A stretch of DNA of 64,000 nucleotides from Basidiobolus meristosporus CBS 931.73 (Eukaryota > Fungi > Basidiobolomycota): contig MCFE01000009.1 of the NCBI GenBank assembly GCA_002104905.1, positions 1 to 64,000 of the forward strand, read 5' to 3'. The notes beneath the pieces were generated by a model. The model had not been told where the DNA came from, searched no databases, and saw nothing but the letters and a program-made list of their open reading frames with translations. A program made the translations under genes and the position numbers. The first letter of the stretch is position 1; every line of letters starts with the position of its first letter. Below, piece by piece: positions 4,941-41,559 of the stretch.

Positions 4941-5001
4941 AAAAAATATCCTCCGAAGAGGTGTCCACTCAAGATGTACGTGTCATCCTTGTGCAGGGGC
5001 C

Positions 5002-5032
<31 letters not shown>

Positions 5033-5058
5033 TTCAAGTGTCAGAGGTCCCGAAGGAC
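4941..5058 (-). ncRNA. U6: U6 spliceosomal snRNA
   Basis: Reverse complement reads GTCCTTCGGGAC (5' hairpin)...TTGGAACGATACAGAGAAGATTAGCATGGCCCCTGCACAAGGATGACACG...ATATTTTTT. It contains the ACAGAGA box, AGC triad, ISL and a T6 Pol III terminator. Confidence 0.97.
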
Positions 5059-5081
5059 ATGACACTACTGTGGCTACAAAG

Positions 5082-5257: not shown

Positions 5258-5703
5258 TAAAAACTAATACTGGAGCCAAGTATATATATATCGGACATCA
5301 TTCTATCACCAAAACCACAGAAGGTAGCTGATTAGATTACTGCCACACTAATGAGAAGACCGTAGGTATGTGAAAGCAATCACTAGCTGGAGACAATTTT
5401 GAATACCTTGGGTCACAAGGTCAGTTTAGTATAGCTTTTGCGTGTGTGCACGTACATATTTGTATTACTTTTGCCACTGGTTTGTTGACTCGGCCATTTC
5501 CCACGCCGATTTGCTGTTGGGATATACTTATAATGTTTTCACCAAAACATCAGTCACTCAAAGTTATCCAAATGAACCAACCGTTGCATTGATGCTGTCG
5601 GAACCCTTCTATGAATATTGTATGCAACGTAAAAGTATAGATAGATACATGTTGAGATATGGTCGAAGTGAATGATAGAAAGCATGAGAAGCGTATTGGT
5701 TGT

Positions 5704-13390: not shown

Positions 13391-16300
13391 TCATTTGGTG
13401 GGCAACTCTATCCCTAGGATAGGGAACAGATTGTGTAGTCGGTTCCTCTTTCCTGCGTTGAGCTCAAGTATGTACTTCTTAAGCGGCTCTTTAAGCGAGT
13501 CGCATTTCAGGAGAACATCTTGAAGTTGGTTCTTCGGAAGCTGGATAAGGACTGTGAAGGACGCTGGCTGGGTAAGCTGATGATTCATGGTGTTAGTGAC
13601 AGGTTTCAAAGCTTCAATCGAACGCCACCAGCAGTACCTTGCAGCACCGGATAAAGCCGTCCCATAACTTGGGCGAGTTCCATATCTTCTTGGTGATCAA
13701 GCGAGAGAGCAAGCTGTTGATGAACCCAGCGAGGTTCTTGTGAAGGGAAACACTTTGCATTACCTAAATATAGAATGATGTCGGTCAGCAAGCTACTCGT
13801 GATCTGGACTTTACACAGAATGCGGCATACAGTTCGCATGAATAGCGTGGGGATCTTCGGCTGGTCTACTAGCTGTTGGAGGACCACGGCCAAAACTTCG
13901 GAAGTAAATATCTCTGGAAGAGAAAAGCATATTTGAGTGGCTACCGATAGCGATGAATTAAGATGAGGATTAGTGACAGAGTTGGTTGTGTGATGTGAAA
14001 AGGAACAAGCTATCTACCCTCCACAGCTCGCTTCAACCCAATCGTATCCTCCATATTGTGCAAGGCAACCAACAGCTCAGATGGGCTGATCTGGGATCGA
14101 CCCGAGCCGGCCCCTTCCCCGTCTCCAGAAGTGCTAATGAGCTTCGACATGACCTCTTTTACAACCTTTCTCTCACTCTCAGTGTTGTTCAAAAGGCATA
14201 TGATGTTCGGCAGGAAACGAAACGCCTCCTCCTAATTACTCGGTTAGATTGAACTAGAGCACTGGTGAATCCTCCTAAACACTTGCCTTTTCTAGACCAG
14301 GCATGATAGGGATCAGGAAACGCGCATCCAGCTCGCGCTGAGTGTAGATGGACTTGACGGTATTCACCAGTTGAGGAGAAGGTTTGGCTAAGCATGGCAA
14401 CGGTGAGATGCCGCTCGAAGGCAAGGCAAGGCAACACAAGCTTACCTTTATCTGTCAGGATAACCAATATACGAAGCACCAGAGTCTCCCCGCCCTCGTG
14501 GAAGTTCCGGAGGATATTCAAAAGCTTGGTGGAATTCATGCCGATGGATTTGATCAGCGGATATATCTCCTGTCTGATGACTTTTCGCACGTTTTCCGAG
14601 GTTTTGGTGTAAACTACAAAGAGTCTTGGAAGCGTGCGAGTTAGGATGCGGTTGGAGGGGAATGGGGCAGGCCGGCCTACTTACTCCTTCAGGAAGTCTG
14701 GCTTCTTGGTGCATAGGGCAAAAAAGAGCTCCAGGTGGCGAACGATGTCCTGCTCGTCTCTTTGCTGGTTTTTCGCCCCGCCTTCGCTGGGTTCGGTGGA
14801 AACGGGATCGATCTCAGCTGGCTCCGCGTCCTCGTTGTTGGTGTCGAGGGACATGTCAGATAGGGACTGCAAAGACTCGAGGGCGAACGCCTCGATTTTC
14901 GCTGTAATATTAACATGATCGGGCACCCATTTCTTAACTGTTACAATTGCTGGTGATCTGGTGGATCTTTCTTTATGAATGCAATAGGACAACAATATAT
15001 CTAAACAAACATCTCGAATCGGTGGTCGTAGATTGGCAAGATCACGTAACAGCGACAACCCCATCAACAGTTTCTGAGAGTCATCACAACACATTTTGAC
15101 CATGGAGGCTGCATGTTCAGTGACCTCCGGGATGTCCAAGAAGAACTTGGTTAATATCCTGTCCTTCGCATCAACTGTTGGTATACAAACGTCCAAGAGT
15201 CGGTGGAGCCATTTGGGATACTGGGGCTCCCATGAAAACTCTTTCCCCATTAGCACGTCGTTGTACCATTCCTCTTGGAGCCATAGGGCAGCCAGCTCAT
15301 GTCTGGCTCTGAAGTTCTCCGCCACAAAGTTGCAAAGGATTTCGCGTAGCTGATCCTTGTAGTTTTCGAGATGCTTATGATCCTCCTCCTGAGAAGAGTT
15401 GTCAACAACCGGGACTCCTCTCGCTACTAGCCGCGCAACAATCGACATCCAGTCAGTAAAGCTATCCTCGCCCGTACGTCTGGTCGTGGCCAAGTGCGAT
15501 CCACCGGGCCCGATAAGCGTGGACTCCGTTTGAAGAATTCGAATCAATGCATCCTTGGCCATGGTTTGGTACTGGTCGTTGTCGTAGACCACCGGCGCGC
15601 CAAGCTCGAATGGCTTGGATTCAAGAGGCCGATCGTTGACCATGTTCTCCACCCTTTCATCCACCTATGAGGAAATGTTTAACACAAAACACCGCTTGGC
15701 TAGAAATGCTTCTACAAACACCTACCTGTATGTTTTCTGATAAGGACGGCTCCCTCTCCTCCGTCTTAACTTGAGCCTCCACCTCCATACTGTCCGAGGT
15801 GTCCAGGCCCACTTCACTCTTGATAGGAACGTCGCCGACTTCATCCTCAAACCCAGCTGTCTGGTATGGATTTACTGCATCCGAATCATCTCTGTCCATG
15901 TGAGCGAGATTGTTTTGGCTATGGGCCGCTTTCATCCGAGGATCTTGGGGCCTTCCTTGCAATCTTGGATCACGGGAAAGCGTTTCTGACGAGCTGGGAG
16001 CATCTTTACGAACCCTGGGGTCCCGGGATTGGCCTTCGGCGGGTTCCGTGTCCCTGGCTTGAACTCTGGGGTCCTTGGGCGCCGGAGCACCAGACGAGGA
16101 GTCGTTGAACGAACCTTTGCTCTCTTGAGCTAGATCGGCCAGGTTTTCAACTCGGCGCATTCTCTAGAGCAGGTAATTAATAAGTGACCCATATGCAAAG
16201 CCAGATCGTATGGATGGCTTCAAAGCTACCACCGGATATTTACCACAAGAGCTTGGTCGAAACTGCTCTGAGACATACTCTGCAGAGTTGTGATGATGGC

Positions 16301-17845
16301 GTCCACCAAAGGGTCCAACGGCAACTGGGTGACATCAAGTTTGTCTAACACATGTGCAACTGACGTTAAGGACATGACAGATACTCAGGGATTGCGCATG
16401 AAATGATGGAAAAGGATATCTTGTGGTATGGTGTGGCCGTCTGGTTTGGCTCTGGCTTGGTCAGCAGGCCTGGAGCTAGAGCCGGACGATGACGCTGGTC
16501 TCGGCTTTTTGGATGCCCCTGGCTTCTCGGAACTATGGGCACGTTTACTCGCTTGTCTTGGATCGTGTGCTGCTTGCTGCAATTTCGCCATCCTAGCTTG
16601 ATAATGAGCCACTTCGCGCTTGGCTCCGATAGCAAGAAGAGCATCGGTGATTTGCTTTTGATAGCTGGATGGAGGCTTTGATCTGGTGGGTTGTGGTGTA
16701 ACCTTGGTAAGCGCACATGCCAAACTCATAGTGAACAACCAACCGATACCTCATGAGTCCTAAGAGCTGGTTTCTAATCGACCGCTCCACAAATCTCTTC
16801 TGAATGGATCGAAAGTTGCCAGTCGGTGTCCTGTGCCAACTTTCGAATGCGGGCACGACCCGGGGTATAAACTCGGGCCGGAACCTCATAAGCAGTGAGA
16901 GGCAGTTGATGATTGCTGTGATAGAGCCGCTTGACCTTGTGGAGGGAATGTGTGTGAGCCAGTTGACGGCAGACAAGGATGGGTTAGCAATCGACATACA
17001 TGGAGGGCGAGAATAGCAGGGATATGAAGGTATTGAGATGCGAGAGCCCTTCCTCTTCGAGGAGCTTCCTGTCCAGGAAGGGGTGTGAAGAAGGGCAAAG
17101 ATCCAGCGAGACCTCCGGAGAAGTGTTGGACTGGTACCGAAGTTTCCCATTAATTGCGCCACTTTGTAATCAGCATAATCTCGAAAAGTACCTTTTTCTC
17201 TCTACTATCTACAGATTGCACGGTCAGTACTGTGTGCATGAACTTGATCACGTTGATCTTTACTCCGTCGTTCTTGGACTCGAGCAAAGAAATGACTTTG
17301 GTCTTGAGCTCGTGAACGGAATTCCAGGTGTCCTGTTCGGCCGGATGCGTGCACCTAAAGGGAATATCTGGGGTTAGAATCACGTTTCCGTCGACCGCAC
17401 GAGCAAGGGACAACTCACATTCGCTTAAATACAATAGGGTACAGATTCCCGCTGGCTTGTATGACGGACTTGACAACGATCATCGCGGTATCATTTAATA
17501 AAGGCAATAGTGTGTCGGCAGCCAGTTTCAATACTATGTACATAGAACAGAAGAGTTAAGGTATATTACGTCCTCAGGAAAAAAACAGAACTGGCCAAGG
17601 AAAACAGGTTTCCGTAGTAGGATACAATCTGGATGTGTTTCGCCCGAGCGTCTAACTACGCTGATCAGGAAGTTCACCACCCACTGACGGATTTCGGGAG
17701 GTTTCTCAAAAATAAGCGTGTATGTCATAGGGAACAGAGTGGCGAGCTGTTCCGCATCGTCCTTGACATGGTCCCTAAAATCCTCCAGGAGACGAAGTTT
17801 CTCGTTTGGATCGACCTCCGTGAGTGCTAACTGGAGCTTGTCCAT
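13391..17845 (-). CDS. PTA1: Symplekin/Pta1 (pre-mRNA 3'-end processing scaffold), multi-exon
   Basis: ATG at 17845. Recognisable segments are WLQEEWY, FFLDIPEV, LANLRPPIR, FLIPIMPGLEK and EVLAVVLQQLVDQPKIPTLFMRT...LITKKIWNSPKLWDGFIRCCK (Symplekin_C). Confidence 0.92.
14232..14286 (-). other. GC-AG intron (55 bp) in symplekin
   Basis: AAG|GCAAGT...CTAAC...TAG|GAG. Removal joins FLIPIMPGLEK to EEAFRFLPNII in frame. Confidence 0.85.
16354..16419 (-). other. U12-type AT-AC minor intron (66 bp) in symplekin
   Basis: 5'SS G|ATATCCTTT, branch site TCCTTAAC (16365-16372), 3'SS GCAC| 11 nt downstream. Splicing gives TIPQ-D-VLDKLDVTQLP in frame. The unspliced frame stops at 16385. Confidence 0.92.
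17534..17625 (-). other. U12-type GT-AG minor intron (92 bp) in symplekin
   Basis: 5'SS T|GTATCCTAC, branch site TACCTTAAC (17555-17563), 3'SS CATAG|. Splicing gives HPD-L-LKLAADTLL in frame. Confidence 0.82.
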
Positions 17846-41214: not shown

Positions 41215-41559
41215 TATTGTAAATCTGGAGTAACAACTAATAGTCACCTAGCTTAGGCACATAGGTCATAGTCCACAAACCTTTGAGAATTCTGACCAAA
41301 TTCCTTATTGGGATTTACATATACTGTTTTCTCCAAAACATCAGGTATCCCAAGTATGAAATTTTGATAAGTTGTCCCAACAGCCCCAAGCTTTGCACAT
41401 ATGCTGTTGGAACCTTTGTAAGCATATCCTTCATGATGTTGCTGCCAAGACTATGTAAAGTATAAATACTACTTTGACATTCAATAAATGATCAACTTGA
41501 AACCATATAATCTGCTTGTTCTCCCATTCACTCCAAATATCTCCAAAACTTGTACAAGA
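41215..41559 (+). mobile_element. Old solo copia LTR (A)
   Basis: Diverged reverse-complement match to the family LTR. Mutated ends and no recognisable TSD. Confidence 0.75.

Follow-up and report, generated by a model that had tools for sequence, protein, structure and literature searches.

Basidiobolus meristosporus symplekin: a very probable AT-AC intron of the U12 type

The symplekin gene of Basidiobolus meristosporus CBS 931.73 contains a short segment that begins with AT and ends with AC, which raises the question of whether it is an intron of the type removed by the minor (U12-dependent) spliceosome and, if so, whether it differs from those already described in fungi. The gene lies within a stretch of 64 kb that was analysed as a whole and is here called the window. 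An initial interpretation of this DNA, made from its letters alone (the sequence-only reading), had placed the segment in the U12 class, and we reach the same assignment: it is very likely that 16419..16354 of the minus strand is a U12-type AT-AC intron, with all the sequence hallmarks of the class present, a public gene model that splices there and signals that are conserved in the sister species. Splicing at these ends has its basis in the signals themselves, the restored reading frame, the spliced public model and the conservation in other fungi; that the minor spliceosome carries it out is what we infer from them.

Symplekin/Pta1 is the scaffold of the module for 3′-end cleavage of mRNAs and histone pre-mRNAs. 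The host gene had been named as a fungal symplekin, and several lines of evidence bear this out. When its exons were searched singly, the Pfam domains SYMPK_PTA1_N (PF11935, 1.5e-10) and Symplekin_C (PF12295, 1.4e-14) were found on separate exons of what is one protein, the two-domain combination that distinguishes symplekin/Pta1, and the PDB matches agree. A word search with only the exon upstream of the AT-AC intron, under a length filter that leaves out full-length proteins, gave no hits; a single exon of 327 amino acids, compared with a representative library, found its best match in a Basidiobolus ranarum protein (84% identity), and a word search with that protein led to the B. meristosporus CBS 931.73 model K493DRAFT_310239 (P0151, 1173 aa), which is recorded from a single genomic contig and corresponds to the window at every residue, exon by exon, across 14 introns. 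Residues 647-1153 of this protein, the C-terminal domain, match the PDB symplekin chain 6v4x_J (E 1.2e-120), and residues 11-312, the N-terminal HEAT domain, match N-terminal domain chains of symplekin/Pta1, human-numbered ones included; these two domains are what the window protein has in common with symplekin/Pta1 (PDB 6v4x, 3o2q, 9syq). The parts of the gene that are needed below are the following.

13391..17845, minus strand: symplekin coding region (CDS 17845..13391), 15 exons and 14 introns, from the ATG (17845..17843) to the stop codon (13393..13391)
16420..16682, minus strand: exon 5, coding for the low-complexity linker that follows the HEAT domain; its last codons read ...IPQ, with the G of Asp-360 as final base
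16244..16353, minus strand: exon 6, 110 nt, coding for the conserved DVTQLP... helix motif
14232..14286, minus strand: GC-AG intron GCAAGT...AG, 55 nt, used by the public model

The helix motif encoded downstream of the AT-AC intron is kept in symplekins across fungi in an alignment of 53 of these proteins. The use of the GC-AG intron 14286..14232 suggests that the public model was transcript-guided, and the model may thus be taken as an indirect sign of transcript support for the AT-AC junction as well.

The signals claimed for the intron (donor, branch point, AC acceptor and an Asp codon split as G|AT) are all present on the minus strand, at these positions.

16354..16419, minus strand: very probable U12-type AT-AC intron (intron 6), 66 nt long, in phase 1 and splitting the Asp-360 codon (G|AT)
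16410..16419, minus strand: 5′ splice site ATATCCTTTT, matching the U12 donor consensus in full
16365..16372, minus strand: branch-point sequence TCCTTAAC, an 8/8 match to the U12 branch motif
16385..16387, minus strand: in-frame TGA, intron bases 33-35

The last bases of the upstream exon, up to 16420, are ...CAA G; the intron opens at 16419 with ATATCCTTT, which agrees with the U12 5′ splice site /RTATCCTT at 9/9 positions (16419..16411). At the other end, TCCTTAAC is followed by 11 bases, of which the final two are the AC (16355-16354), and the likely branch adenosine, at 16366, lies 12 nt from the last intron base (16354), within the short distance of about 10-15 nt that characterises U12-type introns. 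The spacer between the branch motif and the AC, GTCAGTTGC, is not rich in pyrimidines, and there is no pyrimidine tract. The next exon starts AT GTG TTA GAC, so that G|AT forms an Asp codon and reading continues in frame; in fact, P0151 reads ...IPQ-D-VLDK... exactly over the junction 16420|16353. Catalogued minor introns share with this intron the donor ATATCCTTT, the placing of TCCTTAAC some 12 nt before the 3′ end and the AT-AC termini, and also phase 1, which minor introns favour, and a host gene that is old and serves a core process. With its 66 nt the intron is very short, in line with the 55-80 nt of the U2-type introns of the same gene.

Retention had been predicted to introduce a stop 35 nt into the intron, and the in-frame TGA does occupy bases 33-35. 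If the intron were retained, the protein would presumably end after the N-terminal HEAT domain and the linker, or the transcript would become a target of nonsense-mediated decay. A conventional intron spliced around this stop had been named as an outcome that would overturn the U12 assignment, and GT-AG or GC-AG alternatives were considered and rejected: inspection of the ~60 nt at the end of the upstream exon found no GT donor and no consensus GC donor, the GC dinucleotides in that stretch lacking the donor consensus, and the nearest GT (16384) falls after the stop. Consequently, no U2-type alternative can bypass the TGA.

The coincidence of such signals by chance was estimated from 300 first-order Markov simulations of the 64-kb window, both strands included. 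The strict AT-AC U12 pattern was expected 0.027 times per window and was observed once. The loose U12 pattern was expected 1.18 times and seen twice, an excess that is not significant alone; both matches are annotated introns of the symplekin gene.

The species itself is well provided with introns of this class. For instance, Larue & Roy (2023, PMC10639083) reported 249 minor introns in B. meristosporus (0.554%), the highest density known in fungi, and Olthof et al. (2024, PMC11347168) reported 237, together with genes for U11, U12 and U6atac and a putative, divergent U4atac. Within the 64-kb window, the search with Rfam found no minor snRNA gene, U6 being the sole match, and the case for a minor machinery thus rests on this literature. 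The intron had been presented as direct evidence of an active U12 system, a description that goes too far: the evidence that it offers is at the level of sequence, and the system was already published for this species (PMC10639083, PMC11347168).

In the mechanism that we propose, U11 and then U6atac would pair with the donor ATATCCTTT, and U12 would pair with TCCTTAAC, leaving the branch adenosine bulged at ~16366. The 3′ site would be set by its distance from the branch point (12 nt) and not by a pyrimidine tract, and as a consequence the AC at 16354 would be the one used, the exons being joined inside the Asp-360 codon.

For comparison with other fungi, public symplekin proteins were mapped exactly onto their genomic loci, and intron positions were expressed as codon distances from the conserved DVT motif downstream of the intron. 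The next downstream intron, in phase 0, is kept in all the species compared and anchors the comparison; the Acaulospora locus was left out as uninformative, as its contig ends inside the gene. The following was found at the site.

B. meristosporus and B. ranarum: AT-AC intron at codon -6, in phase 1
Paraphysoderma sedebokerense (Blastocladiomycota), L007 2023..2081: AT-AC intron, present in the annotation, also at codon -6 and in phase 1
Ambispora gerdemannii (Glomeromycotina), L004 2363..2444: unannotated ATATCCTTTT ... TTCCTTAAT ... AC, phase 1, codon -7 (one codon off)
Paraglomus, Diversispora and Thamnocephalis: U2-type GT-AG introns 1-3 codons before the DVT motif
Apophysomyces, Jimgerdemannia, Gamsiella, Nowakowskiella and Sorochytrium: no intron at the site

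The homologous intron of B. ranarum (L001 5670..5747) is 78 nt long and contains a different in-frame stop, TAG. Its donor is identical to that of B. meristosporus at 10/10 positions, and the CCTT.AC core and the 11-nt tail to the AC are kept, whereas identity falls to 46% in the interior, which also differs by an 11-nt indel, and to 1/9 positions in the 9-nt spacer; the flanking exons are 67-73% identical between the two species. Conserved signals around a drifting interior are thus found in B. ranarum, and an intron is also present at the site in Paraphysoderma and Ambispora. In Paraphysoderma, TTCCTTGAC precedes a tail of 11 nt that closes with AC, and the CCTT.AC core is again kept, but the donor is ATAAACACG, which is not the U12 consensus and weakens this comparison. 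A degenerate ATATCC copy, TTATCTTATT, lies 11 nt inside the Paraphysoderma intron, and the donor region may represent a shifted or decaying 5′ site. In Ambispora, the symplekin gene very probably carries a homologous AT-AC intron that the annotation lacks: the public model continues through its first six codons before taking a poor GTCGCA...AG intron. The simplest reading of these sequences is that the AT-AC intron is old, being common to B. ranarum and Paraphysoderma and very probably to Ambispora, and that it would have been lost, shifted or converted elsewhere. Homology between the AT-AC intron and the nearby U2-type introns is no more than plausible, because the site sits at the edge of a variable linker.

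Three other explanations of the segment have to be weighed, the first of which concerns only the choice of the 3′ site. A TTAG acceptor had been pointed out near 16345, and it exists.

16345..16346, minus strand: alternative AG, 9 nt downstream of the AC, in frame, whose use would delete three residues

With the same donor and this AG as the main 3′ site, the intron would be of the U12-type AT-AG kind, 75 nt long, and the protein would be three residues shorter. Such an arrangement would keep the frame, the AG being 9 nt downstream of the AC; the corresponding AG is also present in B. ranarum, and its use would place the junction at the codon of the Paraglomus U2-type intron. However, the AG lies 21 nt from the branch adenosine, compared with 12 nt for the AC, and short distances of ~10-15 nt are preferred in the choice of U12 3′ sites. 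Additionally, the differences between B. meristosporus and B. ranarum in the nine bases from the AC to the AG are all synonymous (GTG/GTT, TTA/CTA), a pattern expected of coding sequence, and this favours the AC acceptor; the public model also takes the AC. We therefore consider it very unlikely that the intron mainly ends at this AG, which is probably not the main acceptor, while an in-frame AT-AG intron ending at 16345 is possible as a minor isoform.

The second explanation keeps the AC as the 3′ end and assigns the intron to the rare U2-dependent subclass of AT-AC introns, which would be removed by the major spliceosome. AT-AC ends alone are no proof of U12 dependence, and the donor of the homologous Paraphysoderma intron starts with ATAA. 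Nevertheless, the B. meristosporus donor is ATATCCTTT and not the ATAAGT-like donor of that subclass, a perfect TCCTTAAC stands at the U12 distance with no pyrimidine tract, and the species has minor snRNAs and hundreds of introns of this type (PMC10639083, PMC11347168), so that dependence on the major spliceosome appears highly improbable.

That there is no intron at all, the motifs being a chance pair in a pseudogene, the product of an assembly error or part of a gene whose stop is read through, has in its favour that 66 nt is a multiple of three and that both exons lie in one frame broken by a single TGA, but it is scarcely credible given a chance expectation of 0.027 even before frame and position are demanded, an otherwise intact and conserved symplekin gene, and the same signals in B. 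ranarum despite its diverged interior, different length (78 nt) and different stop (TAG), the last two of which rule out a coding or read-through reading.

A U12-type AT-AC intron being the preferred interpretation of 16419..16354, another intron of the same gene also deserves attention.

17534..17625, minus strand: intron 1, GT-AG, 92 nt, phase 1, donor GTATCCTAC, CCTTAAC 21 nt before the 3′ end

Both the donor and the CCTTAAC of this intron are conserved in B. ranarum, and the homologous introns, alike in position and phase, carry a perfect GTATCCTTT donor in Paraglomus, Diversispora, Ambispora and Paraphysoderma, in the last of which the annotation includes the intron. From these sequence features, intron 1 is probably also U12-type in Basidiobolus, of the GT-AG subtype. 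The public models of three Glomeromycotina handle this region differently: exon 1 is open up to the GTATCCTTT donor in all three, and the models take an earlier, weaker GT instead and skip a conserved exon 2 of ~39 codons (Paraglomus brasilianum, L002 757-1407; Diversispora eburnea, L003 775-1162; Ambispora gerdemannii, L004 760-1394). The skipped exon is plainly present and open, and it ends at a conserved ...F(K/R)xM|GTGAGT junction. An unrecognised first intron, probably of the U12 type, would thus lead to the loss of a whole exon from the symplekin models of these species.

On balance, we lean slightly towards the view that fungal symplekin carries two ancestral U12-type introns, intron 1 (GT-AG) and intron 6 (AT-AC). 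If this is true, the pair would be at least as old as the common ancestor of Blastocladiomycota, Zoopagomycota and Glomeromycotina; both introns would have been kept together in Basidiobolus, Paraphysoderma and Ambispora and would have been U2-converted or lost elsewhere. Symplekin would then serve as a compact marker for the conversion and loss of minor introns across fungi, the conserved pair being a tidy example of retention, conversion and loss in early-diverging lineages, and such introns would repeatedly lead to broken models of symplekin genes.

The practical value of these observations lies in the relatives. In B. ranarum, symplekin (L001 4172-8936, JASJQH010000329.1) is annotated as two genes, split by the unrecognised AT-AC intron: a 377-aa model ends at the TAG (5699-5701) inside the intron, and a second model, K7432_006996 (827 aa), has as its start the first ATG (6001) of the exon after next. 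The Ambispora model is distorted by the same omission. The expectation that annotation pipelines miss introns of this kind is consequently correct for B. ranarum and Ambispora, in which the intron went unrecognised, but not for B. meristosporus, whose model is correct.

For the B. meristosporus genome itself little changes, as the public model is right and the species is the published record-holder among fungi for minor introns. The AT-AC intron of symplekin is real but ordinary, being already in the public annotation of a species already known as the richest in minor introns, and it shows nothing different in kind from the U12-type AT-AC introns catalogued in B. meristosporus and Rhizophagus irregularis (PMC10639083, PMC11347168). 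What is new is modest: the intron is deeply conserved, the gene probably has a second minor intron, and the two account for the broken models of orthologues. A full-text search for SYMPK together with “minor intron” found no paper on a minor intron in symplekin. To our knowledge, no such intron has been reported in this gene. It had also been suggested that minor splicing could be rate-limiting for symplekin as a 3′-end processing scaffold, which is speculation; in Rhizophagus, the subject of the only fungal test that we found, no proliferation-linked minor splicing was seen (PMC10639083).

Some other features of the window may be mentioned. A further U12 candidate, ATATCCTT at 41424 on the plus strand, was rejected, as it has no usable 3′ site. 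The U6 snRNA gene lies at 4942..5063 on the minus strand (Rfam RF00026, 78.4 bits, full length) and is the U6 of the major spliceosome, not U6atac. Finally, the G+C content falls from ~0.48-0.51 to ~0.37-0.44 in positions 40001-64000, the last third of the window.
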